Of a stretch of 64,000 bases of DNA, positions 36,504-62,165 are shown piece by piece. Under the pieces are notes generated by a model that saw nothing but the letters and a program-made list of their open reading frames with translations, was not told where the DNA came from and searched no databases. The stretch is from positions 394,814-458,813 of IMG/VR virus record IMGVR_UViG_3300023179_000009; one strand, 5' to 3'. Numbering within the stretch: position 1 is the first letter of the stretch; every line of letters begins with the position of its first letter. The translations under genes were made by a program, and so were the position numbers.

Positions 36504-38330
36504 ATGGGTATAGCTGGGGAAAATATAGATCCCAACTGGAAGATCAAATATAAATCTCTAAAAGAATTTTATAAAAGTGAATATGATTCAAAATATTTTA
36601 CTTTTAACAAATATGAGTTAGAAATTGATCCGTTGGAAAGTTTTGAAGAAGTTGAAGCATATGACTTCAATAAACAAAAAAAAGAATTGATGAAGTGTGC
36701 TTTGTCATTTTCTTATTTTTGTCACAAATACGTAAAAATTGCACATCCCAAACGAGGATTATTGCCATTTGTTTTGTACAACTACCAAAGAAGGTGTGTG
36801 CAAGAATATGAAAATCATCGATTCAATATATTATCAAAATTCAGACAGGGGGGACTTACAACCGTTACAGTTTTATGGTGCATGTGGCGATGTATGTTCA
36901 AATTAGATGAAACAATAATGGTTTTATCAAAATCTGATCGTGAGGCTATTGCAGCAGGTGAGATAGTTAAACGTGGACTCATAGAGTTGCCATCTTGGAT
37001 GAGACCAGATATGGATAAGAATAATGACCATCAAAAATTATTCAATGAAACAGGTTGTAAATTATTTTTCTACACACCAGAGGCTGCTCGTGGTCGCTCT
37101 ATTACATATCTTGTTTTGGACGAAGCAGCGTTTATTCCTCAGATGGAGAAACACTGGAAAGCCATGTTTCCCACCATAAGCACTGGTGGACATTGTATCA
37201 CAATATCCACGGTTAACGGCGTGGGAAATTGGTATTATGATATTTTTCAAGGAGCAAAGAAAAAAGAAAATGATTTTCATGTAATCGAATTAGATTATTG
37301 GGAACACCCCGAATACAACGACGCCAACTGGGTCAAGGCAACACGAGCGCAACTCGGAGAAAAAGGATGGCTTCAAGAAGTTATGCGTGACTTTCTTGGT
37401 GCTGGAGATTCGTACATCCCGACAGATGTGATTGTGGATTTAGATTTGGTTACCCAGCAAATAGAGCCGATAAGAATGTTGTTTCCTCAATGGAACAATT
37501 TGGAAGAAGCTCGTGAACAGCGAATTACCGATATGGACTCTTGGACCAGGGGGGCCTTTCATATTTGGCGTGAGCCAATTGAAGGAAGAGACTACATAAT
37601 GGGGATAGATTGCTCGGCCGGTTTAGGAGAAGACAATGACAACTCTGTTATACAAGTTATAGACGCCGTTACTTGCGAGCAAGTTGCTGAATTTTATTCC
37701 AACTTATGCCCACCTTATAACTTTGCTCAAGTTGTTGCAATGGTGGGGAGACTTTATAACAACGCTCAAATTGTTGTTGAAGACAATGGCGGATATGGAA
37801 CGAGTGTTTTGGAAAAATTACAACATGAATTTTTTTATGAAAATCTTTTTGAATCTTCTCAGGGAACTAACAAAAACCCAAAACCAGGAATTAAAACAAC
37901 ACATAGTAACCGACCTAAGTTTTTAGAAATGATTCAAACACGATTAGTTAACAAAAGCATGGCGATTAGATCGAGAAGGCTCGTTAAAGAGCTAAAGGGA
38001 TTTATTTGGAACACAGCAACGAAACGTGCAGAGGCAACCAAGGGCTTTCACGACGATGCCATTATGGCCTTGTGCTTGGCTCTATACGCAAAAGAGTCAA
38101 AAAATAGGGGCGTTCCCATGGGGTCTGCTGAGACCGGTGAATCCTATACAGAAACTTATAAAGCTGAAATTTATGAAGAAATAAAAAAAGAACTATCCAA
38201 AGACAGCCCGGATGATTGGATGGAATCTGGGGACGACTATCTTATGGGCAAAATAAACGATTCTGATGCTTCTTTGTATTATAAGTCCAAACGACCACAA
38301 GATGATTTACTTAAAGAATTCGGATGGTAG
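36504..38330 (+). CDS. terL: Terminase large subunit (T4 gp17-like)
   Basis: KFRQGGLTT, Walker B LVLDEAAF, ISTVNG, nuclease GIDCSAG and HDDAIMA. Confidence 0.95.
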   Translation: MGIAGENIDPNWKIKYKSLKEFYKSEYDSKYFTFNKYELEIDPLESFEEVEAYDFNKQKKELMKCALSFSYFCHKYVKIAHPKRGLLPFVLYNYQRRCVQEYENHRFNILSKFRQGGLTTVTVLWCMWRCMFKLDETIMVLSKSDREAIAAGEIVKRGLIELPSWMRPDMDKNNDHQKLFNETGCKLFFYTPEAARGRSITYLVLDEAAFIPQMEKHWKAMFPTISTGGHCITISTVNGVGNWYYDIFQGAKKKENDFHVIELDYWEHPEYNDANWVKATRAQLGEKGWLQEVMRDFLGAGDSYIPTDVIVDLDLVTQQIEPIRMLFPQWNNLEEAREQRITDMDSWTRGAFHIWREPIEGRDYIMGIDCSAGLGEDNDNSVIQVIDAVTCEQVAEFYSNLCPPYNFAQVVAMVGRLYNNAQIVVEDNGGYGTSVLEKLQHEFFYENLFESSQGTNKNPKPGIKTTHSNRPKFLEMIQTRLVNKSMAIRSRRLVKELKGFIWNTATKRAEATKGFHDDAIMALCLALYAKESKNRGVPMGSAETGESYTETYKAEIYEEIKKELSKDSPDDWMESGDDYLMGKINDSDASLYYKSKRPQDDLLKEFGW

Positions 38331-40574: not shown

Positions 40575-43106
40575 ATGTGGTGGGATTTTTTTAAAGTATT
40601 CACATATGCCTTTACTGAAGATCCTTTGTCTGAAAAGAACAAAAATGTGCTTACAGGTGCAGGTGTTTCTCAGCTTGATGCAATACCTGATTTGAGATCG
40701 GGAAATGAAGGATCGATAGGCGGTGGGACATCGATTAGACTAAGAGACACAAATGATTTCGTTGACCTCTCCACTGTAACAAATAGGATTCATCGATACA
40801 AAGAGTACGAAAGACTCAGGAATATGCCAGAAATTGAGATGGCTATGACTGTGTTTGCAGATGAGACCTGTCTCTCCGGAGATACAAGAGTTTCTACTCC
40901 ACAAGGCATGAGAACATTGAAAGATTTGGCAGAAAACGAGAAAGAGAGATTCCTTGTTTATTGTTATGATTTTAAAAAACAAGACTACACATTAAGTTGG
41001 GCACACAGTGCCAGAAAAACAAAAACAGCCAAAACTATAAAAATCATATTTGATAATGGGGATCATGTCGTATGCACACCAGACCACAGAATTCTAAATG
41101 CTGAGGCCGAATGGGTTTTGGCCGGAAGTTTAAAAACAGGCGATGAGTTGATGCCATTTTATAGAATTGAAGCAAATCCCGATTTGTCGAACAGCAAAGT
41201 AAATCAATTTCCTAGAATCTATTCAACTATTCATGGCTGGGTACACGAAAGACAATTTATTGATCATTGGAGAACTGGTAAGATACCAGAGGAGTTGCAA
41301 ACCCTAAACAAATATTGCCGAATGATAGCGGGTGGTTTAAATATTCGACAAATAAAAAAAATTACACAAAATCAATTTAAGACTGTGCGTGATAGGTTGG
41401 CGAAACATGGTTTTTCAAACAAAGAACTAAAATGGCTCGGTACAAAATCAAAAACAAGACGGGTAGTCTCGGTATTTGATTATAAAGAAATGGATGTATA
41501 TGACCTATCGGTTGACGAGCATGAAAACTTTGCAACAGATTGGGGCATAGTTCACAATTGTCAAAAAGACGACTCTGGTAGAGCATTTCAAATACACACA
41601 AAAAACAGCGATGCAAAAGAAGAACTTGAATTTTTATTTTTTCACAAAAAAATGTTGAATTTTGACCAAAAAAGAATTTGGAATTTAGCAAAATTACTTT
41701 TTATTTATGGAGACTTTTTTTATGAGGTTATTATAAACCCAGAGAATCCTTCCGAGGGCATTTATAATCTCATACCACTTCCTGCCGATTCGATGTATAG
41801 GTTGGAAACCACCAAAGGAAAACTATTAGAATTTCAACAATCAAAAGAAGGCCCCGATTATCAAAGTTTGGCAAACGTTGATATAACTCAGGCGACAGAT
41901 GCGGACTTGCAACAATCTACAGCCATTCGATTTGCTCCCGAACAAATTATACACATTCGAATTGGGGATGATAGAAAAACTTTTTATCCTTATGGCGTTT
42001 CTTTAATGGAAGCAGCACGTGGTCCAGCACATCAATTAAGATTGATGGAAGATGCCATGGTTGTTTACAGACTGTCAAGATCGCCAGAGCGAAGAGTTTT
42101 TTACATAGATGTCCAACAATTGCCACCATACAAGGCCGAAGCTTTCATAGAAAGAATGAAAGATCAATTCAAGAAAAAGAAAGTACCCAGCACCGGTCGA
42201 GCGCCTGGGGCCTCGTCTGTTGAGGAGAGATGGCAAACTCCTGCTGTCGATGAAGATTTTTGGATTCCGATTCGCCCAAATGCAAACACTAGGGTAGAAA
42301 CGCTTCCTGGGGCAAGCAATCTAGGAGAAATAGATGATGCTCTTTATTTTAGAAACAAGTTATTCACAGCATTAAATTTTCCAAGGAATTATTTTAACAA
42401 CGAAGATGTCAACAGCACCCGAATAGCCTTGTCTGCTCAAGATGTAAAGTTTGCTAGAATGATTGAAAGATTGCAAAGTCATATCGAAGATGCTTTGTGG
42501 GAAGTCTGCAATCGTCATCTTAAATTACAAGGGTATCCTGAGGAGTCTTATGATGATCTTGTTGTTAAGATGACTCCGCCCTCGGATTGGCGTGAACTCA
42601 CAAGAGCGGAAGTGGTTACAAATCGTTTGAACAATGCTTCAAACTTAAAGAGTGCTATGTTGCTTAGTGATTATGATATACTAACAAAATGGCTTAAATA
42701 TAGCGAAGAAGAAGCCAAAGAAATGATAGCAAGATTGAAAATTCAAAAACTTGATGATCTTAAGTTGCAAATTGTTGCACAAAATCCTACATTATTAGGA
42801 GTTGGATTGCCAAATCCAAACGAGCCAGAAATAGGAACAGATCCCGGTGGGCCAAACCCAATGTTGGCACCAGATGCTGGTCAACAAATGGCACCAGATG
42901 CTGGTCAACAAATACCACCAGATGCTGGTCAACCGGCTTTAGGAATGAAAAAATTTATGAATGCTGATCAACAGGTTCCAAAATCTGGTAGTGGGGTGGC
43001 CATACCTGATGCCTCTGAGGAAGATATTCAAAAATACAATTTGGATATTAAAGATTTTGAAAAAGAAATGGATGAAGAAGAAGTTGACATGAGTGAAAAT
43101 TTATGA
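40575..43106 (+). CDS. gp20: Portal protein (T4 gp20-like) containing an intein
   Basis: YERLRNMPEIEMA, QLRLMEDAMVVYRLSRSPERRVFYIDV, EDFWIP, ETLPG, YFRNKLFTAL motifs of gp20. Confidence 0.95.
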   Translation: MWWDFFKVFTYAFTEDPLSEKNKNVLTGAGVSQLDAIPDLRSGNEGSIGGGTSIRLRDTNDFVDLSTVTNRIHRYKEYERLRNMPEIEMAMTVFADETCLSGDTRVSTPQGMRTLKDLAENEKERFLVYCYDFKKQDYTLSWAHSARKTKTAKTIKIIFDNGDHVVCTPDHRILNAEAEWVLAGSLKTGDELMPFYRIEANPDLSNSKVNQFPRIYSTIHGWVHERQFIDHWRTGKIPEELQTLNKYCRMIAGGLNIRQIKKITQNQFKTVRDRLAKHGFSNKELKWLGTKSKTRRVVSVFDYKEMDVYDLSVDEHENFATDWGIVHNCQKDDSGRAFQIHTKNSDAKEELEFLFFHKKMLNFDQKRIWNLAKLLFIYGDFFYEVIINPENPSEGIYNLIPLPADSMYRLETTKGKLLEFQQSKEGPDYQSLANVDITQATDADLQQSTAIRFAPEQIIHIRIGDDRKTFYPYGVSLMEAARGPAHQLRLMEDAMVVYRLSRSPERRVFYIDVQQLPPYKAEAFIERMKDQFKKKKVPSTGRAPGASSVEERWQTPAVDEDFWIPIRPNANTRVETLPGASNLGEIDDALYFRNKLFTALNFPRNYFNNEDVNSTRIALSAQDVKFARMIERLQSHIEDALWEVCNRHLKLQGYPEESYDDLVVKMTPPSDWRELTRAEVVTNRLNNASNLKSAMLLSDYDILTKWLKYSEEEAKEMIARLKIQKLDDLKLQIVAQNPTLLGVGLPNPNEPEIGTDPGGPNPMLAPDAGQQMAPDAGQQIPPDAGQPALGMKKFMNADQQVPKSGSGVAIPDASEEDIQKYNLDIKDFEKEMDEEEVDMSENL
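40869..41558 (+). mobile_element. Intein (230 aa) in the portal
   Basis: Block A CLSGDTRV, block B CTPDHRIL, block F VYDLSV..HENF, block G IVHN followed by +1 Cys. Confidence 0.95.
42867..42932 (+). repeat. 24-bp imperfect tandem repeat (A/P-P-D-A-G-Q-Q) in the portal C-terminus
   Basis: GCACCAGATGCTGGTCAACAAAT repeated about 2.75 times. Confidence 0.85.
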
Positions 43107-43336
43107 AATCAATAATTACAGAAGCTCCAAAAAGAGCGTTAAAGAATCGTGAAGAAATATCCAAAGCAACCAAGTGTAGTTGCTATAGCTGTTTCTCTGT
43201 ATTCGATTCCAAAGAAATAAAAAATTGGACAGATCAAAACAAGACTGCCATTTGCCCAAATTGTTCAGCAGATACTGTTTTGCCCGAAGAATTAAACATG
43301 GATACTTTAAAACAGATTAAGAATTACTGGTTTTAA
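43103..43336 (+). CDS. Small zinc-ribbon protein
   Basis: CSCYSC...TAICPNC motif. Confidence 0.65.
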   Translation: MKSIITEAPKRALKNREEISKATKCSCYSCFSVFDSKEIKNWTDQNKTAICPNCSADTVLPEELNMDTLKQIKNYWF

Positions 43337-43680
43337 GCGTCTCCGCCAAAACCACTATCTGCTTCTGAGGGTTTAACTTCTTCTTTTTCTTCAGGGTGTT
43401 CTGGTTTTTTTCCCATTCTCAAAAAATGATTTTTATCAATTTTTCTAAGCATCACCACAATTTCATTATCTCCACGTTGTGCAAGTGTATGAAAAAAATC
43501 TAGAGTTTCTTCAGGGTACTTTTTTATAGCAACGTCAAATAAGTCTTTTTTTACTTTGTCGTGATCATCTGCATAATCTGCGTCTTGATCATTAAATTTA
43601 TACTTATCCACAAAATTTTCTTCGTCATTCATATTTTCTTTTAATCGCTTATTATTAAGCCAATCTGTGAAGTTGTACAT
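43333..43680 (-). CDS. Hypothetical protein with CTS-like N-terminus
   Basis: Likely ATG at 43680 after GAGG; begins MYNFTDWLNNKRLKE. Confidence 0.55.
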   Translation of the reverse strand: MYNFTDWLNNKRLKENMNDEENFVDKYKFNDQDADYADDHDKVKKDLFDVAIKKYPEETLDFFHTLAQRGDNEIVVMLRKIDKNHFLRMGKKPEHPEEKEEVKPSEADSGFGGDA

Positions 43681-43745
43681 TTTTTCCTCTTTCAAATTAT
43701 AAAATTTGCACGTTTCTGCATAACTAGAGTGTAGTAGACAGCGTG

Positions 43746-45690: not shown

Positions 45691-46386
45691 ATGGATCAGA
45701 TGTTACTCATCGATTGCTGTGCTAGCTCTGGATTCGAACTACAACTTAGTGAGTCTACTATGAAAGGTGGACTCACTAAATTTCGTGGCAAGTTCCAAGA
45801 AGCTGAAGCAGTAAACAAAAACAAAAGAATGTACCCTTTTGATGTGCTAAGTGAAAACATTGGCCGTCTTCAAGAGGCAATAGATGATCGTAGACTTGTT
45901 GGAGAGCTAGATCACCCAACAGACTCTATTATACATTTTGCAAATACATCTCACGTAGTTACCAAACTATGGTGGGAAGGAAACGTTCTCATGGGCGAGG
46001 GCGAAATCCTAAACACACCGTCTGGTATGATTTTGAAAAGTCTTATTGATGGCGGCGTTAAAGTTGGTATCAGTTCAAGGGGAGTTGGTAATGGAAAGGT
46101 GAACGAAGATGGCATTCTTGTCATCGGTGAGAGTTATAAACTTATCACATTCGACGCCGTTGCAGACCCCAGCACTTTTGCTGCATTCCAAGAAAAAGTC
46201 GTTGCTAAAGGTGAGAGTTTTAATCCTCAAGTTAAAGAGCAAATTCGTTCTACACAACAAAAATCAAAAATTGCTGTGAAAAATGAAAGCTCCAGCATAC
46301 ATAATGTTAACAAAGAGGTATTAATCGCTTACTTAAGCGGCTTTGTAAAATCTCAAACACAAGAAATTAAGTCGAGGTTAGGCTAA
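45691..46386 (+). CDS. gp21: Prohead maturation protease (gp21)
   Basis: NKNKRMYP, GELDHP, SHVVTKL, ILNTPSG, GISSRGVG, ITFDAVADPS. Confidence 0.95.
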   Translation: MDQMLLIDCCASSGFELQLSESTMKGGLTKFRGKFQEAEAVNKNKRMYPFDVLSENIGRLQEAIDDRRLVGELDHPTDSIIHFANTSHVVTKLWWEGNVLMGEGEILNTPSGMILKSLIDGGVKVGISSRGVGNGKVNEDGILVIGESYKLITFDAVADPSTFAAFQEKVVAKGESFNPQVKEQIRSTQQKSKIAVKNESSSIHNVNKEVLIAYLSGFVKSQTQEIKSRLG

Positions 46387-47282
46387 TGGATAAAATTACT
46401 GAAGCATTGAAGAGCATCCTTCCTGCTGAGCATGTCAATGAGGTTGCCAAAGCCGTCGAAGAAATGATGGCTGAAAACGTCGCTGCACTCGAAGCGGAGT
46501 TCCAATCCAAATTGGACGAGGCTTACGAGCAACTTACTGAAGAACGTAAGGCTGATGAAGTCATCGCTGAAAATGGCTATCAACAAGCCTATGACATGAT
46601 TCAGTCTTTGATGGCTCGTTTGGATGAACAACGTGAAGAATTCGAAACAGCGTTAGAAGAAGGCTTTGAAGAAGCCTATAGCGAACTACAAAAAGAAAAA
46701 GGTCGCAACGAAACTCTTGAAGTAGAAATATACGAAGAAGCAGATAAGAAACTTCAAGAAATGAAGAGCATGATGGTTGACAAACTTGATCAATTCTTGT
46801 CGCTACAAGAACAAGAAATGTACGAGTCAGCCAAACGTGATGTTCTCAGCGATCCAAGCATACTTGAGCAAAGAGTTGCAGTTGAGAAGATGGCTGAAGT
46901 CCTTGCTGATTATATCGGTGACGACACCATCAACAATGCAACATCGGCCAAACTTGAAGAAATGCAAAAACAAGTTGAAGCCCTTAAAGGTCAAATGAGA
47001 ATTATTGAAGCCAAAAACGTTCGTCTTGCTACTCAAAACAACAAGTTGACCGAGCAAGTCCGTGAGGCTCACGAAGTGATCACCGAGGCTGCAAAAGCCG
47101 AGAAAACGAATAGATTGAATAAGAAAGAGAATGCAAGTGGGCGTGGACAAAGAGTTGTGAACGAGCAAATTATTAGTGAATATGCCGCTCCAACTGAAAA
47201 ATCGGCAAAAGAGGCTGACCTGCGTGAGGGTCATGATCCTTTAGCCGATCTTCTGGTTCTTTCAGGTCTTGAACAAACCTGA
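46386..47282 (+). CDS. gp22: Prohead scaffold protein (gp22)
   Basis: Acidic coiled-coil protein between gp21 and gp23. Confidence 0.85.
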   Translation: MDKITEALKSILPAEHVNEVAKAVEEMMAENVAALEAEFQSKLDEAYEQLTEERKADEVIAENGYQQAYDMIQSLMARLDEQREEFETALEEGFEEAYSELQKEKGRNETLEVEIYEEADKKLQEMKSMMVDKLDQFLSLQEQEMYESAKRDVLSDPSILEQRVAVEKMAEVLADYIGDDTINNATSAKLEEMQKQVEALKGQMRIIEAKNVRLATQNNKLTEQVREAHEVITEAAKAEKTNRLNKKENASGRGQRVVNEQIISEYAAPTEKSAKEADLREGHDPLADLLVLSGLEQT

Positions 47283-47328: not shown

Positions 47329-48774
47329 ATGAACGCACGTTTCCTCAACGAAGCACGTGAGATCGAGACCAGATGGTCCAAGCCTCTTCGTAACGGCAAG
47401 TCGATGCTTGATGGCATCACCGACCGCTACGAGAGAGCTTCTGCCGCTGTTCTTCTCGAAAATCAACGTCTTATGAACGAAGCTATGACCGACAGTGGTG
47501 ACATTTCGCAATTCAAAAGAATTTCGATACCACTCGTCCGTCGTATCTATCCACAATTGATCGCCAACAAAATCGTTTCGGTCCAACCATTACTTGGCCC
47601 AACCGGTTTGGTCTACTATCTCCGTTTTAGATACTCTTCAAACAAGGGTGCTATGCGTGGTGCTGACCTCAATAGCGGCTTTCCAAGCGACGACGCAACA
47701 TCGTTACAACAACTTGCTAGCGGTGATGGCAATTTAGACATCTTCTACACTCATCAATTTGTTCAAAATGAAACAAGTTCGACTGATGCTGGCGGAGATA
47801 CAACTTCAGTGTATGCTCCACTTGAGCACACTCCAGTTCTTGCCGGAACCGTGACTGGCACCGTTTATGACGGCTCAGTTGCTGTTCAAACATTTGTTGT
47901 TGCCGAGAATGGTACTTTCACCTTCACCGACATCGGAACCCCATCTGCTAAAGCAACTGGCGGCACCGTTGATCTTGTGACTGGCGAAATGACCCTTACT
48001 TGGAACAACGATCCAGGTGCTAACAATGTTGTTGTTTCATATGAATACAACATGGAATGCAATCAAGATCTGCCTGAAGTCAACCTCGTTGTTGAATCAG
48101 AAGAAATTGCTGCTAAGACTCGTAAGTTGAAGGCTGCTTGGAGCTATGAAGCCCAACAAGATCTTCGCTCACAGCATAACCTCGACGCCGAAGCCGAACT
48201 CACCGCAGTTCTCGCTCAGGAAATAAATTTGGAGATAGATAGAGAGGTGCTAACTGACCTTCGTAATAACGCTGGTACAGTGGCTGTGTGGGATTTCAAT
48301 ACTGCTCTCGGTGACACCATCAAAGAGAAGTATGAATCACTCTATGTGAAGGTTGTTGAAGTCAGCAACGTTGTGCATCGTAAGACACTTCGTGGTGGCT
48401 GCAACTGGCTCGTGACTTCACCTGAAGTTGCATCAGTTTTCGAAACTGCTACAGCCGGTTTTGCACCAGCCCCAAGTGAGACTTTCACAAGTTCGCTCGG
48501 CATCCAATATGTTGGCACAATCAACAATCGTTGGAGACTGTATAAGGATCCACTGTTCCCACAAGGTCAAATCCTCATGGGTTACAAGGGCGACAGTTAC
48601 ATGGACAGCGGATACTTCTACTGCCCATACGTGCCACTCACCCAAACCCCAGTCGTACTCGACCCAGAGTCGTTTTGTCCTCGCAAAGGAATATTAACAA
48701 GATATGGGAAAAAGTTGCTTAGAGAGGGAGCAAAGTTCTACGCCCGCATGAGCATCGCAAATTTCATCGTGTAG
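47329..48774 (+). CDS. gp23: Major capsid protein (gp23)
   Basis: LLENQ, IPLVRRIYPQLIA..IVSVQP, KTRKLKAAWSYEAQQDL, QEINLEIDRE, YCPYVPL, GILTRYG. Confidence 0.97.
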   Translation: MNARFLNEAREIETRWSKPLRNGKSMLDGITDRYERASAAVLLENQRLMNEAMTDSGDISQFKRISIPLVRRIYPQLIANKIVSVQPLLGPTGLVYYLRFRYSSNKGAMRGADLNSGFPSDDATSLQQLASGDGNLDIFYTHQFVQNETSSTDAGGDTTSVYAPLEHTPVLAGTVTGTVYDGSVAVQTFVVAENGTFTFTDIGTPSAKATGGTVDLVTGEMTLTWNNDPGANNVVVSYEYNMECNQDLPEVNLVVESEEIAAKTRKLKAAWSYEAQQDLRSQHNLDAEAELTAVLAQEINLEIDREVLTDLRNNAGTVAVWDFNTALGDTIKEKYESLYVKVVEVSNVVHRKTLRGGCNWLVTSPEVASVFETATAGFAPAPSETFTSSLGIQYVGTINNRWRLYKDPLFPQGQILMGYKGDSYMDSGYFYCPYVPLTQTPVVLDPESFCPRKGILTRYGKKLLREGAKFYARMSIANFIV

Positions 48775-48914: not shown

Positions 48915-49277
48915 ATGTACGAAATAAAATGTCCTGTGTGTGGTCAAAAAAGATCTGTCAGGGCTAAAAAACCTTGGATGTCAGGGGAGCCACCGTTTTC
49001 AAAAATCTGCAAGAGTTGTTGCCAAAAAGGCAAAGAAAAAACTCCGGAGTGGCGGTCAAAACTTTCGGAATCAATCAGGATTCTTCAAACTGAAGAAGTG
49101 CTTCAAAAAAAGAGCCAGTTTATGAAAGACCACCCTGAAGTTTGGAAAGAAAACCTTATATTTGGACAATCTGCCGGATGGAACAAAGGCAAGAAAATGC
49201 CCAAAACCTCTGATGAAATTAGAAAAAAGATATCGGATTCTTTAAAAACTACTTTAAGAAAAAAGAAAGACAATTAA
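48915..49277 (+). CDS. Zn-ribbon/NUMOD3-like DNA-binding protein (homing-endonuclease related)
   Basis: CPVC...CKSCC; WNKGKKMPKTSDEIRKKISDSLK NUMOD3-like motif; no catalytic domain seen. Confidence 0.6.
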   Translation: MYEIKCPVCGQKRSVRAKKPWMSGEPPFSKICKSCCQKGKEKTPEWRSKLSESIRILQTEEVLQKKSQFMKDHPEVWKENLIFGQSAGWNKGKKMPKTSDEIRKKISDSLKTTLRKKKDN

Positions 49278-50401
49278 TGAACATTGAAGAATTTAAAATT
49301 AAATTTAAAAAAAATTTTTATAGAGACAAAATTGACATTAATTGTGGTGTTGAAGGTTGTCATCGATTATCTCACGTAAACAAAGATTCAGCTTTTAGAA
49401 ACATAAAAAAATATGGAATTTTCAAATGCCGAAATTGTTGCTACACAGTCGATGGTAAAAAAAGAATATCAGAGGCCACTTCTTACGAACGGTCGCCCGA
49501 TACATGTGAAAAAATGTCAAAAGCCAAAAAATCTTTTTACCAAACTGAGCGGGGTCAAGAATTAAAAAACAAACTATCTTTGGCAACAGCCGAAAATCAC
49601 ACGGTTCATAAATTTGATAAATTTAAAAGAAAAGGGGTTTTTCAATCCAAGAAGACTGGAAAAAAATTGTCATATGACTCTTCTTATGAGTTATTGCTTT
49701 GTTGGATGTTAGATTCAGATGAATCTGTGGTGGATTTTGAAACTCAATTAGTATTTAAAATAAACAATAGAGGAAGGTGCTTAGATTGCCTTATCACTTA
49801 CAAAGCGGGTAATAAAAAAGCAATAGAAATGAAACCAAAAAAAAGAATAGATGAATTTAAAGAACAAATTAATGATAGTAGAGAATATGCAAATCAGAAT
49901 GGGTGGGATTTTCAATTAATGACAGAGGATGATTTGGGCATGAGCTATAAGGAGATAAAAATTTGGGCTGACGAATACAGATCCAAGACCGAAGGAGTAG
50001 ATTACTCTGCTTATAGAAGAGAAATCAATAAAAACAAGGCCAAAAAATATTATCAGTCTCGTATTGCCAACGATAAAGTCGAAGTTTATTGTGAATATTG
50101 CAAAGAAATCCACAACCCACTTCGTTTAACTTATGACAGAAATATTGTTCGTAACGGTCGATATGTTTGTGAACGAGAGGGTGGACATATAGCTGGCAGC
50201 AAACCCAAGCCGCATCTTAAAAAGACTAACCCCTATGAATCAGAAGGTAAGAAAGAATGCAATGCCTGCCAATCTGTTCTTGCTTTGGATCTGTTTAGTG
50301 CTGGTAAGAATATTTGCAAAAGTTGTAGGGCTAAGAAATATAAGGAAAAATATAAGGATAAAAAAACTTGTAATTTAGATACAAGTGTTTTTTTGTCCTA
50401 A
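49277..50401 (+). CDS. TnsA-N-like PD-(D/E)XK free-standing endonuclease with Zn-binding and NUMOD3-like modules
   Basis: YDSSYELLL...DFETQ...LDCLITY...AIEMKP; RSPDTCEKMSKAKK; several CxxC pairs. Confidence 0.7.
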   Translation: MNIEEFKIKFKKNFYRDKIDINCGVEGCHRLSHVNKDSAFRNIKKYGIFKCRNCCYTVDGKKRISEATSYERSPDTCEKMSKAKKSFYQTERGQELKNKLSLATAENHTVHKFDKFKRKGVFQSKKTGKKLSYDSSYELLLCWMLDSDESVVDFETQLVFKINNRGRCLDCLITYKAGNKKAIEMKPKKRIDEFKEQINDSREYANQNGWDFQLMTEDDLGMSYKEIKIWADEYRSKTEGVDYSAYRREINKNKAKKYYQSRIANDKVEVYCEYCKEIHNPLRLTYDRNIVRNGRYVCEREGGHIAGSKPKPHLKKTNPYESEGKKECNACQSVLALDLFSAGKNICKSCRAKKYKEKYKDKKTCNLDTSVFLS

Positions 50402-52251: not shown

Positions 52252-52656
52252 CTATTCCCCCAACTCAACCCCTTTAACGTCTTTATTTTTGCGCAACCAT
52301 TCGAGGAACGAGTTGACGTTTCTTCTTAATGACATTTTAACTTCATAAGTGTCGTTTTCTGTTTGTTTGACGCTCAAGACACGCCCGCCGCCGACTGACA
52401 CGATACCTGCGATAAAGTCTGGGTTAACATCACTGGCGGCAATAACGACAGTGATGTCTTTTGGTGATAATGATACTATTCCAACACCGGCAACTCCCAA
52501 AAACACGCAAAATGCTGCGGCCCATACAATACGTTGAGGCCATTTGCTTCTTGGGGTAACGATTTGGCCCATGCCCACAACAGGTGAGTTTTCTTGACTA
52601 TTTCTATGATTTTTTAAGTATTCTGGTAGATCTTGTAGGGGCATTGGGTCGTTCAT
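52252..52656 (-). CDS. Single-pass membrane protein
   Basis: WAAAFCVFLGVAGVGIV hydrophobic helix followed by a small ferredoxin-like domain. Confidence 0.55.
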   Translation of the reverse strand: MNDPMPLQDLPEYLKNHRNSQENSPVVGMGQIVTPRSKWPQRIVWAAAFCVFLGVAGVGIVSLSPKDITVVIAASDVNPDFIAGIVSVGGGRVLSVKQTENDTYEVKMSLRRNVNSFLEWLRKNKDVKGVELGE

Positions 52657-52706: not shown

Positions 52707-52714
52707 TATAAATA
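52707..52714 (+). promoter_or_regulatory. T4-type late promoter box TATAAATA
   Basis: Exact match about 20 nt upstream of the three-gene CTS operon. Confidence 0.45.
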
Positions 52715-52733: not shown

Positions 52734-53123
52734 ATGAAAACATTTCAAGAGTGGTTGAACGAAAATCGATACCGTGATACTTATTCGCCAGCTTATGGTG
52801 GCGGCAACATAGAGCAACTGGCCAAATCAAGAACCAGTGGCCTTTCCTACGGCGGAAGATCGTTGGCCAATTGGAGTGCTGTTAATGCGGATCGGAATAA
52901 AATAAAAAAAGAAATGAGTGTGGACCAACTATCACGTGATGAGAATGGCGTTCCTACATTGAGTACGGACACAGTGAGAAGGATACAGGATCTTTTGGAT
53001 CGTAAAGGTCTCACCATTTCAAAAGAGTCACCAAATAGATTTGCTGTATTAGACGATGAGGGCAACGTAGTGTTTCATAGCAACGGTTGGTCTGATATTG
53101 AAAAAACCCTCCAGCAGATTTGA
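52734..53123 (+). CDS. Hypothetical protein with CTS-like N-terminus
   Basis: Begins MKTFQEWLNE. Confidence 0.65.
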   Translation: MKTFQEWLNENRYRDTYSPAYGGGNIEQLAKSRTSGLSYGGRSLANWSAVNADRNKIKKEMSVDQLSRDENGVPTLSTDTVRRIQDLLDRKGLTISKESPNRFAVLDDEGNVVFHSNGWSDIEKTLQQI

Positions 53124-53132
53124 TATGATTTT

Positions 53133-53966
53133 ATGAAAACATTCCAGCGATTTTTTCTAACTGAGGAAAATTTTGAGCAATTTCAAAATTATCTTAGAAA
53201 TACCGGCATGACATTTGAGCAATTGCTGCAAAAATTACGTTCTGGTCGTCCTGATGGTGTGGGTGGCAATGCTAAATTTTATCGAATACCCGGAACAGAG
53301 TTTGGCGTTCGGGAAGTGAGTTCTTCTTGGGGCGTGCGTGACACATCGCATCCAAAACTCGTGGCTGCTCATGATCCTTTTGATGGGGAAAACTTTGGCC
53401 AACCTGTGGCTCATTATGGAAACAATGTACAGGTATTACGACTTCAGCATGGTTCACCTGCTGGCAAGCCGTATGGAATTAATAAAAAAGATGCTCAAGC
53501 CGATGATCGTGCGGTTCAGGCTTATAGGCAGAGAATTTTTGATGCTGCAAATCTTTCAGACGGTGCCTATGAGCGTTTGATGATGCAAATTATAAAATTA
53601 AATGAAAAAGGATACAAAGTAGATTCAAGCAAATCAGGTAATTTACTGATCGATCCACGCTCTGATAGATTTAATATTGTGGATTTAAATCCATTACAAG
53701 ATGAAAAACACAATAACAACGGCGGAGATATTATACTCATGCTTGTTGATAATTTTTTCTTTGAAAAGCATGAGTTTTATAATGACCCGGAGATAGCGAA
53801 GGCTGGTCAAGAAATCATTAAAAAGGTCGAAAGAGCATGCAATAAAACAGGACTGTCTTTGGGCGATAACGGCAGTGCTGATTATTCACGTGAATTGACC
53901 AGTGGAAATTATAAACCTTACGTAGCACCTCCTGATTCTGGAATCAAAGTAAACGATGTTTGGTGA
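53133..53966 (+). CDS. Protein-kinase-like fold protein with CTS-like N-terminus
   Basis: Begins MKTFQRFFLTEE; Gly-loop GVGGNAKFY, catalytic-loop-like VDSSKSGNLLID, DFG-like IVDLN. Confidence 0.55.
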   Translation: MKTFQRFFLTEENFEQFQNYLRNTGMTFEQLLQKLRSGRPDGVGGNAKFYRIPGTEFGVREVSSSWGVRDTSHPKLVAAHDPFDGENFGQPVAHYGNNVQVLRLQHGSPAGKPYGINKKDAQADDRAVQAYRQRIFDAANLSDGAYERLMMQIIKLNEKGYKVDSSKSGNLLIDPRSDRFNIVDLNPLQDEKHNNNGGDIILMLVDNFFFEKHEFYNDPEIAKAGQEIIKKVERACNKTGLSLGDNGSADYSRELTSGNYKPYVAPPDSGIKVNDVW

Positions 53967-53972
53967 TAAACA

Positions 53973-55400
53973 ATGAAAACATTCTTAAATTGGCTCAAAA
54001 ACAAAATAAACGAAAATCAAGATCCTAAAACTATTCGTGATTTAGGGATCGATGGTGTTCCTGATGGTGTGAAAAAACAAATTGATATTTTTTCAAGCGA
54101 TGATTGGCTGCGTGCCATCGATGCTGGGCGAGAATATCAAATGATAAAATTTGCCGATGTTAAGTTTGATTCAATTGAAAAATATTATGCAAACTTAGAT
54201 CAATCAATAAATACTATTCGTGATATAAAAACTTTAAAAATTGGTCAAAAAATTGCAGATTACGCAATCAGAAAAACTCCGTATTGGGTGGTTACGGGCG
54301 TTGATGAGACTAGAAACGTTGTTTACCTTGACCCAATTAAGCCCAATCCATATGTTCCAGATGCTTCTGGAAAGATGGTTGGTGCTGGGGGGCATGAATT
54401 TACAGCACATGATTTTGATGTGATGAGCGGCGAATATGAATCAAGAAAAATTGATCAATTACTCGATATAATCAATTCAAAAAACTATCATGATCCAAGA
54501 GATGTCGCATATATCCTTTTGGGCACAGTGCCGGTGCAATCTGGCCCTAATGGATCTCAAGGGGGTTGGTATAACGTATTTGATAGGCACAATAGGGGCA
54601 GTTTGAAATCAATGACTATTGAGCAAATTATACAAAAAGATGCACAAACTTTAAAAAAACTTGGATTTTCGGTGCCTGCTAAATCTTTAAATGGAACAAT
54701 TAAACCAGATGCTTGGAATGCATATGTTGAGGGAGGATATGTTCCTCGTGGTCAAGAGCAAGAATCGCAACTAGAAGAAGAAGATTTCCAAGATGCTCAA
54801 ACTATGGCAAAAATTATTTTAACTCACAGCCAACCTCAAATTCGTGAAAGAAATGCCGATCTGTTAATAAAAATGTATTCCGATAACCCAGACGGGTTTG
54901 AACCTTTGATCCGGGATGTGTCGATGAAACTTGCTGCCCAACCACAATTCGGTAAAGATTTTGATCGCAATTACAATGTTAAAGGAAAATTTATTTGGCT
55001 TGCTTGGCACAACAAATGGCAAGATATTTTGGATGCTTTCCAAGACAGCCCAGAACCTGACAACAGACGTTATGTTTCACATGGATACAAAGAATCAGGT
55101 AATGTTAATGGAATTATTGAAATGATTAAAAAAGAAACTAGTTCTGAGGCTGTGGGATCGATGTTGAACGATTTATGGAGCATGAAGTTTGAAGGAAAAA
55201 TTCCTTATTTCACTTCGGCTGAAGAGAAGGTTTCTATTTATAAAAAACTTTTTGAAGAAGATGCTGAGTCTAAGGATGTGGTAATATTCTTTTGTTCAAA
55301 CAAAGACAAAATTAAAAAAGTTATAGATAATCACGAATACCACAAAAAAGATGGTGGTATCATTTTTGATAGATTTAGCAAGTTGTGTGAGTTGGTTTAA
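53973..55400 (+). CDS. Hypothetical protein with CTS-like N-terminus
   Basis: Begins MKTFLNWLKNKINE; helical C-terminal half. Confidence 0.65.
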   Translation: MKTFLNWLKNKINENQDPKTIRDLGIDGVPDGVKKQIDIFSSDDWLRAIDAGREYQMIKFADVKFDSIEKYYANLDQSINTIRDIKTLKIGQKIADYAIRKTPYWVVTGVDETRNVVYLDPIKPNPYVPDASGKMVGAGGHEFTAHDFDVMSGEYESRKIDQLLDIINSKNYHDPRDVAYILLGTVPVQSGPNGSQGGWYNVFDRHNRGSLKSMTIEQIIQKDAQTLKKLGFSVPAKSLNGTIKPDAWNAYVEGGYVPRGQEQESQLEEEDFQDAQTMAKIILTHSQPQIRERNADLLIKMYSDNPDGFEPLIRDVSMKLAAQPQFGKDFDRNYNVKGKFIWLAWHNKWQDILDAFQDSPEPDNRRYVSHGYKESGNVNGIIEMIKKETSSEAVGSMLNDLWSMKFEGKIPYFTSAEEKVSIYKKLFEEDAESKDVVIFFCSNKDKIKKVIDNHEYHKKDGGIIFDRFSKLCELV

Positions 55401-58167: not shown

Positions 58168-58414
58168 GTTTGTCCTTCTTCTTTTTCTTGATTTTCTTTT
58201 TCTTGTGTTTCTTTGATGCTTTTTTTATCTCGGGATTTAACAAATCTGGGTGAACATCACTGTGCGTTGTTGCAAATGCATTTAAATGTCCAGCAACACT
58301 CGGAGCAAAAGCAAGAGGAGGAAGTTGTCCGCTTCCGTAGAGTGGCGGATATATTCCCAGTGCTGTGCGTTTGCCACGTTCATTTAGCCATTGTGTGAAT
58401 GATTGCAAAGCCAT
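58148..58414 (-). CDS. Small basic protein with CTS-like N-terminus
   Basis: Begins MALQSFTQWLNE; Lys-rich C-terminus. Confidence 0.55.
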   Translation of the reverse strand: MALQSFTQWLNERGKRTALGIYPPLYGSGQLPPLAFAPSVAGHLNAFATTHSDVHPDLLNPEIKKASKKHKKKKIKKKKKDKLKDLGL

Positions 58415-58578
58415 TATGTGTTTCCTTTTTTGTGATCCAAGTCTAAAAGCAACATATTTTTGTCAAATTCTTCTTTTGTAATTAGCTCTGCTGCTAACAT
58501 TTTTTCAAGTTTATTTTTTCTTTTTTCGTAATCTTCCTGGGTCATTTCTTCAAAGACCCAATTTTTAAAATCTTTCAT
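58414..58578 (-). CDS. 54-aa protein, not in the ORF track, with CTS-like start and SHOCT-like helix
   Basis: Hand translation MKDFKNWVFEEMTQEDYEKRKNKLEKMLAAELITKEEFDKNMLLLDLDHKKGNT; ATGA and TAATG coupling to both neighbours; AAGGTG SD. Confidence 0.7.
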   Translation of the reverse strand: MKDFKNWVFEEMTQEDYEKRKNKLEKMLAAELITKEEFDKNMLLLDLDHKKGNT

Positions 58579-60998: not shown

Positions 60999-62165
60999 AT
61001 GCTAAAGTCGTTCAAATTTCAACTACTACCCACGAAAGACCAAAAAGAAAAACTGAGCCAGCATTTTGGTTGCAGAAGGTTCGTGTGGAATTATTTCTTG
61101 AACAGACGAAAAGAAGAATACTTAGACAACAAGAAAACATTGAACTACTACGATTGTGCCAATGAACTGACAAAGGTTAAAAAGCAGACGGAATACAACT
61201 GGCTCAAGGAAGTCAACAGCCAAACATTGCAACACACATTGCGTGACTTGGACACGGCATACAACAAGTTCTTCAGAAAAGAAACCAAGTTTCCAATCTT
61301 CAAATCAAAACACAAAAAGCAAAGTTTCAGAGTCCCGCAGCATATTGCAGTCAAAGAAGACAAAATATATTTCCCAAAATTCAAGGAAGGAATCAAATTA
61401 AACATTCATCGTGAATTTGGTGAGATAAGGTTCATCACCATATCCAAGACTCCGACCAACAAATACTTTGTTTCGCTTACCTGTGAGGTTGAACAAAATA
61501 AACTCAAAAAAAACAAGAACAAAATAGGTGTTGATTTGGGCATCAGGAACTTTGCTGTTTGTTCTAATGGTGAAGTTTTTGATAATCCCAGACACTACCA
61601 CAAACTAGAGAAAAAGTTGAAGTACAATCAAAGACAATTGAGCAAAAAGACAAAAGGAGGACCGACCAGAGGAAAACAAAGACTAAAACTAGCCAAGATA
61701 CATGAGAAAATCACCAACAGCAGAACGGACTTCTTGCATAAACTCTCCAGAAAGTTGATTGACGAAAACCAAGTCATATGCGTAGAAGACCTTAATGTGA
61801 AGGGCATGATGAGTAATCATAAGTTGGCAAAATCAGTAGCAAATTGCGGTTGGGGAGAGTTTGTTCGTCAACTATCCTACAAGGCGGAATGGTATGGACG
61901 AACAATTGTGAAAATAGACAGGTTCTTCCCGAGCAGTAAAACTTGCTTTGATTGTGGATACATCAATCAAGAATTCTCACTGAAAGACCGTGAATGGAAA
62001 TGCGTTTGTGGTAAGAACATTGACCGAGACTACAACGCTAGTCTCAACATACTAAAACAAGGCTTGAATATGAGTGGTTTGGGAACCAAGTCGCTCAATA
62101 AACAAAAACAAGTGGAGTCGTTGTCGCTAGACAAGGCTATGAAACTTGAAGCCCAATCCCTTTAG
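60999..62165 (+). CDS. tnpB: TnpB RNA-guided endonuclease
   Basis: N-terminal HTH (QKEKLSQHFGCRRFVWN), RuvC-I GVDLG, RuvC-II VEDL, CFDC/CVCG Zn finger, RuvC-III DRDYNA; all catalytic acids present. Confidence 0.95.
   Translation: MLKSFKFQLLPTKDQKEKLSQHFGCRRFVWNYFLNRRKEEYLDNKKTLNYYDCANELTKVKKQTEYNWLKEVNSQTLQHTLRDLDTAYNKFFRKETKFPIFKSKHKKQSFRVPQHIAVKEDKIYFPKFKEGIKLNIHREFGEIRFITISKTPTNKYFVSLTCEVEQNKLKKNKNKIGVDLGIRNFAVCSNGEVFDNPRHYHKLEKKLKYNQRQLSKKTKGGPTRGKQRLKLAKIHEKITNSRTDFLHKLSRKLIDENQVICVEDLNVKGMMSNHKLAKSVANCGWGEFVRQLSYKAEWYGRTIVKIDRFFPSSKTCFDCGYINQEFSLKDREWKCVCGKNIDRDYNASLNILKQGLNMSGLGTKSLNKQKQVESLSLDKAMKLEAQSL

Follow-up and report, generated by a model that had tools for sequence, protein, structure and literature searches.

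A kinase-fold protein with a putative capsid-targeting tag in an uncultured huge phage

Could a tailed phage carry a protein kinase in its head and deliver it to the host together with its DNA? The question is raised by a gene for a 277-residue kinase-like protein in a 64,000-nucleotide stretch of DNA, hereafter the window, which forms the final 64 kb of the single linear IMG/VR virus record IMGVR_UViG_3300023179_000009 (458,813 bp). An earlier note, made from the sequence alone, had described this gene as the middle member of a three-gene operon whose products carry a capsid-targeting-like tag and which is preceded by TATAAATA, the T4 late-promoter consensus, and this arrangement was indeed found in the window, as follows.

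52707-52714 (+), TATAAATA box, an exact match to the consensus, 19 nt before the ATG of ORF1
52734-53123 (+), open reading frame 1 (ORF1), 129 residues, N-terminus MKTFQEWLNE, function unassigned
53133-53966 (+), kinase-like protein, 277 residues, N-terminus MKTFQRFFLTEENF
53133-53165 (+), tag of the kinase, MKTFQRFFLTE, with F4, F7 and L9-T-E11 and a putative gp21-type cleavage site after E11
53973-55400 (+), ORF3, 475 residues, N-terminus MKTFLNWLKNKINE

The three ORFs share one strand, are separated by gaps of 9 and 6 nt, and encode products that all begin with MKTF. Scans against Pfam and PHROGs returned no matches for any of them, and blastn and tblastn searches of 50,697 GenBank phage records left the kinase, the operon DNA and ORF3 all unmatched, so that the kinase family has no detectable member in those records.

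The N-terminal tag

In the T4 record the internal proteins IPII and IPIII both begin with MKTYQEFIAE, and mutagenesis of the T4 tag has shown that these 10 residues are enough for encapsidation, that residues 4 and 7 are important in targeting, and residues 8 and 10 in processing, and that gp21 cuts after L/I-x-E (PMC9026906). The start of ORF1 is identical to this sequence at six of the 10 positions and conservatively changed at three more, with no shift of the L-x-E motif, while the kinase tag retains the aromatic residues at positions 4 and 7 and has its L-x-E shifted by one residue (9-11). The capsid-targeting-like start proposed in the earlier note thus agrees with IPII and IPIII at the positions that are important experimentally, and a gp21-family protease and a gp23-type head are encoded in the same window. 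Among close homologues of the kinase, E11 is at least 90% conserved.

Similar starts are found across the genome. The pattern M..[FY]..[WFY][LIVMF] opens 22 of its 671 crude genes, against 1.4 expected from the rate of the pattern at internal Met positions, and a cleavage motif of the form [LIVMF]-x-E lies within residues 7-20 in 19 of these 22 genes as compared with 23% of the others (Fisher p=1e-9); a variant shorter by one residue, M-x-F-K-x-W-L, was noted in ten further genes. The proteins headed by the tag are unrelated to one another, and include, besides the kinase, ORF1 and ORF3, a 720-residue, CCA-adding-like enzyme with HD and PolyA_pol domains, a flavin mononucleotide (FMN)-reductase-like protein and a DUF5662 protein. 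The tag is also kept in homologues of the kinase on other contigs (MKTFREWLFTE, MNSFKSYLFVE, MNFKEWLYKEE and similar) and in homologues of ORF3 (MNFKQWLNLQE, MEFRLWLEAEE and similar), and in the family tree the tagged stand-alone kinases form a single clade, with a Shimodaira-Hasegawa-like approximate likelihood ratio test (SH-aLRT) value of 99, apart from the forms embedded in giant proteins. As the tag is found in 22 of 671 genes against an expectation of 1.4, is accompanied by an enriched cleavage motif and is kept in orthologues, it is not a product of chance; it is real and specific, and on the sequence evidence it is best explained as a T4-type capsid-targeting propeptide. The kinase itself is probably targeted to the capsid.

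Tagged genes are often clustered, and the set may represent a very large ejected proteome. Examples outside the operon include the following.

G000:C1, 17136-17603 (-), tagged gene
G000:C1, 71983-72633 (-), tagged gene
G000:C1, 73824-74234 (+), tagged gene
G000:C1, 204196-204792 (+), tagged gene
G000:C1, 209332-211494 (-), tagged gene
G000:C1, 361187-369381, cluster of tagged genes
Window, 43333-43695 (-), tagged gene
Window, 58414-58578 (-), tagged gene

The T4-type head module

The head genes of the window are of the T4 type and lie upstream of the operon.

36504-38330, large terminase
40575-43106 (+), gp20-type portal, 843 residues, Portal_T4, contains an intein
45691-46386 (+), prohead protease of the T4 gp21 family (Peptidase_S77; PF03420, E=6.6e-25; phrog_207, E=6e-49)
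46386-47282 (+), putative scaffold or core protein, Glu-rich, 298 residues, between the protease and major capsid genes
47329-48774, major capsid protein, gp23-type, Gp23

The Peptidase_S77, Gp23 and Portal_T4 genes, each above its Pfam cutoff, are located 4-12 kb upstream of the kinase gene, with the gp21-family protease gene at a distance of 7 kb, and this protease is presumed to be the processing enzyme of the tags. The putative scaffold protein holds 16 [LI]-x-E motifs in its 298 residues, which is the pattern expected of a gp22-like core that is degraded by a gp21-like protease; from its gene position and motif count, it is presumed to be the docking partner of the tags. The major capsid protein shares 78% identity with its counterpart in a 595-kb record of an uncultured phage, and only ~30% with those of cultured T4-like phages. 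Because the head module is T4-type and the capsid protein is so distant from its cultured counterparts, the source is a huge uncultured phage that assembles its head in a T4-like way. Its record has a CheckV completeness estimate of 91%, a guanine plus cytosine (GC) content of 35% and 12 tRNAs. The splicing domain of the portal intein was located at residues ~111-328 (PF14890, E=6e-14).

Fold of the kinase-like protein

The structure model and Foldseek comparison that the earlier note had called for were run, and both uphold its assignment of the product to a kinase fold. The AlphaFold2 model was built on 75 diverse homologues (21-69% identity; 12 of the 75 from proteins >1500 residues) and reached a predicted local distance difference test (pLDDT) score of 94.7 and a predicted template modelling (pTM) score of 0.89, and it has the bilobal architecture of the superfamily of protein-kinase-like (PKL) proteins. 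When the model was compared with the PDB, the effector kinases NleH1 and OspG came top and every listed match was a kinase; in the structural search of Swiss-Prot, the best models were those of OspG (top), Bud32 and AceK. The fold-match scores are individually middling, and it is their unanimity together with a profile match that carries the weight: searched against all PDB sequences, the kinase-family profile retrieved NleH1 (E=3.6e-6) and NleH2 (E=4e-5). The product almost certainly adopts a protein-kinase-like fold and belongs to the PKL superfamily.

Metagenomic protein collections yielded 15 close homologues and 266 representative clusters at E<=1e-3. The query kinase had no Pfam match even at E<=10 (inclusion of OspG_kinase, PF22303, among the models was unchecked), and Pfam searches with all 75 family members gave sporadic weak matches only. 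The BFVD search retrieved no close structural relative, its best match (E 3e-4) being to unrelated phage kinases, and a profile search of a genome-contig collection with the close-homologue alignment produced no matches. The alignments of NleH and OspG to the model are confined to its residues ~30-231. Unusual features of the predicted structure include two N-terminal helices before the Gly loop and C-terminal helices (197-255) with a nearly invariant K231.

Active site

The elements of a phosphotransfer site were located at the following positions.

53253-53282 (+), Gly-rich ATP loop, D41-G-V-G-G-N-A-K-F-Y50
53310-53312 (+), codon CGG of R60 in F57-G-V-R-E, predicted strand beta3, at the 'VAIK' Lys position
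53391-53402 (+), N87-F-G89-Q90 before strand beta4, a family-specific motif that occupies the canonical alphaC-beta4 segment
53445-53453 (+), Q105-H-G107 in the hinge, where the last N-lobe strand ends, Q in 72 and G in 75 of the 75 homologues, the Gln being a family signature
53622-53642 (+), catalytic loop, D164-S-S-K167-S-G-N170
53676-53690 (+), metal-binding 'DFG-like' motif, I182-V-D184-L-N186

The Gly-rich loop, the Arg at the 'VAIK' position, the catalytic loop and the IVDLN metal motif had all been read from the sequence in the earlier note, and the profile alignment to NleH1 confirms these assignments, as it places G-x-G-G-N-A-x-V-Y on GKGGNAVVY, R60 on the catalytic Lys of V-L-K, and F-N-x-V-D184 on F-N-P-I-D. 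Seven residues (G44, G89, Q90, G107, D164, N170 and D184) are invariant in the 75 homologues, and the Gly-rich loop, the catalytic Asp and Asn and the metal-binding Asp of the PKL superfamily are all present. Within the Gly loop, G45, N46 and A47 are kept in 54, 62 and 53 of the 75, respectively. K167 is a Lys in 64/75, including all rows of the giant clade and 24 of the 25 tagged rows. Position 60 is occupied by Arg in 59 and by Lys in 14 of the homologues; Arg is found in 23/25 tagged and 14/14 giant-protein rows, and the two residues alternate in the other members, at least one of which is bacterial.

In the predicted active site, residues 42-47 would form the Gly loop, R60 and K167 would contact the phosphates, N170 and D184 would hold the Mg, and D164 would serve as the base. 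Because the Asp/Asn/Asp triad shows no variation and Arg is naturally exchanged with Lys at position 60, the evidence points to a working phosphotransferase that may anchor ATP through an Arg. The earlier note had left the choice between a kinase and a pseudokinase; the former option is favoured by these two features and the latter is disfavoured. Catalytic competence of the protein is thus predicted to be likely.

Distribution and genomic context of the kinase family

A distinctive kinase clade in polyvalent proteins was described by Iyer, Burroughs, Anand, de Souza and Aravind in 2017, who noted its conserved Gln in the last N-lobe strand, predicted that these kinases are injected with DNA, and mentioned stand-alone versions (PMC5512222). 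The kinase studied here appears to be a member of this family. It shares the conserved Gln (Q105, at the end of predicted strand 99-103), its phosphotransfer residues are intact, and the same sequence family occurs as a module of multidomain proteins of phages and conjugative elements. For another published signature, a Glu before strand 2 with a His-Asp insert, no conserved Glu or His was found at that place in the diverse alignment. The present protein differs from the described forms in being a free 277-residue protein with a T4-type propeptide in a huge myophage of the gp23/gp21 type. No published experimental work on the polyvalent-protein kinase family was found.

The same kinase domain was identified within proteins of 2000-5000 residues. 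One of them, with 4295 residues, comes from a 40-kb phage contig, where its gene lies two genes downstream of that for the terminase, and the C-terminus of this protein gave a match to a PHROG made up of virion structural proteins. Another (P0132; 4823 residues) has the kinase domain at residues 683-931 and is a classical 'polyvalent protein', since it also carries ART-PolyVal, ddrB-ParB and helicase domains; Pfam searches detected no domains in the giant homologues P0034, P0038 and P0040 or in P0054, and P0132 is the only one with polyvalent-protein domains. The presence of the same domain in virion and polyvalent proteins provides an independent link between the kinase family and virions.

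The genomic surroundings of the kinase differ among the relatives. The order ORF1-kinase-ORF3 is kept on a contig that is 86% identical (L005). In a 69%-identical relative (L001), the genes for the protease, scaffold, capsid, a TnsA-like protein, a divergent 134-residue membrane protein and the kinase are kept in this order, the ORF1 homologue comes after the kinase, and ORF3 is absent. The ORF1 homologues that adjoin the kinase gene are 84 residues long in L001 and 159 in L005. On a 373-kb IMG/VR contig (L006, 4203-5813), the kinase domain forms the C-terminal half of a 536-residue ORF that starts with MLFSQWLETE, contains a second, internal tag-like sequence (MKSNIRFKEWLIE, ...RFKEWLIE) right before the kinase part, and is followed by two more tagged ORFs; either two tagged cassettes have been fused in this ORF, or its start was mis-called. 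Because the gene order around the kinase varies in these three relatives, the kinase is a mobile cassette within clusters of tagged genes, and such clusters resemble the internal-protein loci of T-even phages, which are likewise variable.

Proposed role and alternative explanations

The following sequence of events is proposed. The kinase would be made with the T4-type capsid-targeting propeptide MKTFQRFFLTE, which would dock it to the scaffolding core of the prohead, and the gp21-family protease would then cut off the propeptide after L9-T-E11. The mature kinase of ~30 kDa would be kept in the DNA-filled head with the products of both flanking tagged genes, would be ejected together with the DNA, and might phosphorylate host or co-injected proteins in an ATP-dependent manner before any phage gene expression. 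The likely purpose would be host takeover or the disarming of defence, as achieved by T7 with its early kinase. Delivery may thus resemble that of a T4 internal protein, and activity that of an NleH/OspG- or T7K-type kinase. The mechanism as a whole, that is, an active, capsid-tagged kinase that is packaged, ejected and acts early, is considered moderately probable.

Several observations weigh against it. The domain is not exclusive to virions, since members of the family also occur among bacterial housekeeping genes: an untagged protein of 316 residues on a bacterial contig (P0066; L023:8001-8951) is encoded among dxr, an rseP-like gene, lptF/G, pyrH, frr, uppS and cdsA, and in some bacteria the kinase family is thus represented by ordinary chromosomal genes. 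Between beta3 and beta4 the prediction has the invariant N-x-G-Q in place of an alphaC helix with a Glu, and with Arg replacing the canonical beta3 Lys the chemistry could be atypical. A search for RNA runs holding the kinase gene listed none. As regards TATAAATA, the box occurs 16 times in the window as compared with 5.5 expected, and lies <=60 nt upstream of 4/22 tagged and 8/649 other genes (p=4e-4). No such box precedes the capsid, portal and protease genes, and a single-sequence search of the phage's own genome found no homologue of T4 gp55, by which a T4-type late sigma factor is neither shown nor excluded; the use of TATAAATA as a late promoter here is only plausible.

It is conceivable, though unlikely, that the protein is an active kinase-fold enzyme that stays unpackaged and acts in the infected cell late in infection. 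The N-terminal motif would then be another signal, such as an amphipathic helix common to these starts, a preference in translation initiation or the boundary of a recombination cassette. In keeping with this, the tagged genes include ordinary-looking, housekeeping-like enzymes (HD plus PolyA_pol, FMN reductase), so that the tag may not always mean packaging, and their number (~30) is far above the three internal proteins of T4. However, the motif fits the experimentally defined T4 targeting determinants position by position, the gp21 cleavage motif follows it in nearly all of the 22 genes in a genome that has a gp21-family protease, and the related kinase domain in other phages belongs to virion or polyvalent proteins, all of which argues for the packaged kinase.

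Another explanation, which is quite improbable, combines the kinase fold with a non-protein substrate or with non-kinase chemistry. Candidates include the phosphorylation of small molecules, nucleotides or lipids (as by APH, Kdo and choline kinases), ATPase activity (Bud32) and AMPylation (SelO). Against these stand the sole relatives detected in the PDB at the sequence level, NleH1 and NleH2, which are protein kinases, as well as the conservation of K167, a Lys of the Ser/Thr-kinase type, in the tagged and giant clades, and the invariant Asp of the catalytic base. That the protein has lost catalysis and is a pseudokinase which, once packaged, serves in binding or as a scaffold is very improbable: an Arg at the canonical Lys position, where Lys-to-Arg changes inactivate many eukaryotic kinases, and the apparent lack of an activation segment, as in other minimal kinases, would fit this view, but D164, N170, D184 and the Gly loop remain invariant down to ~21% identity, which is not expected without catalysis, and the Arg is one that naturally alternates with Lys.

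Comparison with known systems

The type III effector 'half-kinases' NleH1, NleH2 and OspG are the best matches among solved structures and the sole significant matches of the sequence profile. They share with the packaged kinase proposed here the G-x-G-G-N-A-x-V-Y loop, the metal motif F-N-x-[IV]-D and perhaps a minimal core without activation loop, and, as is proposed for the phage kinase, they reach the target cell through an injection apparatus. On the other hand, identity to them is 14-18%, the beta3 residue is Arg rather than Lys, the catalytic loop exceeds that of NleH by one residue (D-x-x-K-x-x-N, with the insertion between the catalytic Asp and Asn), and the N-terminal and C-terminal (197-255) helices are extra. 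The phage kinase must act on a bacterial rather than a eukaryotic target, and its delivery would proceed via capsid and tail, not a secretion system. The family is treated as a sister of NleH/OspG and not as a member. The NleH/OspG genes of enteric pathogens have been reported to be prophage-borne. OspG itself consists of sub-domains I-VII only (PMC3585378).

For T4, IPI, IPII, IPIII and Alt share the tag (aromatics at 4 and 7; L/I-x-E at 8-10(11)) and the gp21-family protease, and the internal-protein genes form clusters of unrelated small cassettes that have the tag alone in common, as observed here. IPI is a restriction inhibitor and Alt an ADP-ribosyltransferase. No kinase is known among the tagged proteins of T4, and the tagged genes number 3 in T4 as against ~22-32 in the present genome.

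The T7 kinase gp0.7 is also a phage kinase-fold enzyme and acts at the very start of infection, phosphorylating most host and phage proteins and disarming retron and DarTG (PMC13645617). It is expressed early from the entering DNA and is not packaged, and its features include a DPV motif and, at the C-terminus, a shut-off domain. The protein-language-model neighbours of the present kinase include a cluster partly annotated as Phage_T7_kinase. Membership in the gp0.7 family was rejected, as hhalign gave a probability of 0.9% (E=0.064) over 28 columns of the Gly-loop region only.

The kinase family was already known, in silico; what is new is that the kinase stands alone and carries a capsid tag, that its active site is built around an Arg, and that the genome holds so large a tagged repertoire. 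A kinase inside the capsid would act before transcription, earlier than the T7 kinase and at the stage when the incoming genome is most exposed. The same domain would reach the host by two routes, through a capsid-targeting propeptide or through fusion into a giant virion protein. The polyvalent-protein kinase family also gains a small soluble member with a confident model, which, at 277 residues, should be easier to handle biochemically than proteins of 2000-5000 residues, and the genome-wide tag offers a simple sequence rule to predict the ejected proteome of uncultured T4-like huge phages. A broader view can be offered only tentatively and remains doubtful: the capsid might be pre-loaded with 20-30 tagged proteins, including an Arg-using kinase, a CCA-adding/HD enzyme and a flavin reductase, as an enzymatic 'starter proteome', in which case the kinase would represent the first example of a stand-alone protein kinase packaged into the capsid of a tailed phage, and an evolutionary bridge between phage-ejected proteins and NleH/OspG.

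Other features of the locus and genome

ORF3 belongs to a family that has no Pfam entry and comprises at least 59 metagenomic proteins; the same kind of tag is seen in many of them. Its model (pLDDT 87.6) consists of an N-terminal beta-rich domain, with the invariant motifs GAGG (137-140) and GPNG-x-Q-GGWY (191-200), and a C-terminal HEAT-like repeat. Structural searches with ORF3 gave no informative match beyond this repeat, and an atlas feature search was likewise uninformative.

The immediate neighbours of the operon are a membrane protein and a stretch of unusual composition. Directly upstream of the tagged cassette and divergent from it, a 134-residue protein with one predicted membrane segment is encoded at 52252-52656 (-), and its position is kept in the relatives L001 (71% identity) and L005. 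Directly 3' of the operon, the segment 55454-57426 (+) has a low GC content (27%) and contains a glycosyltransferase-like ORF, two more unassigned ORFs and two TATAAATA boxes (56044, 56095).

Mobile elements are also present within the phage genome. A TnsA-like ORF with a restriction-fold endonuclease character is found at 49277-50401 (+), ~500 nt 3' of the capsid gene and after a 120-residue ORF, and in L001 it directly follows the capsid gene; an IS200/IS605-type transposase is located near the contig end at 60999-62165 (+) (phrog_506, E=3e-138). When the start of the contig was compared with its end, no terminal overlap was found. At the start itself (G000:C1:1-400), the first 100 bases are repeated at offset 195 as a tandem duplication. 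DNA almost identical to the window was found in lake and freshwater metagenomes, and for part of the stretch also in seawater, in eleven studies dating from 2011-2025.

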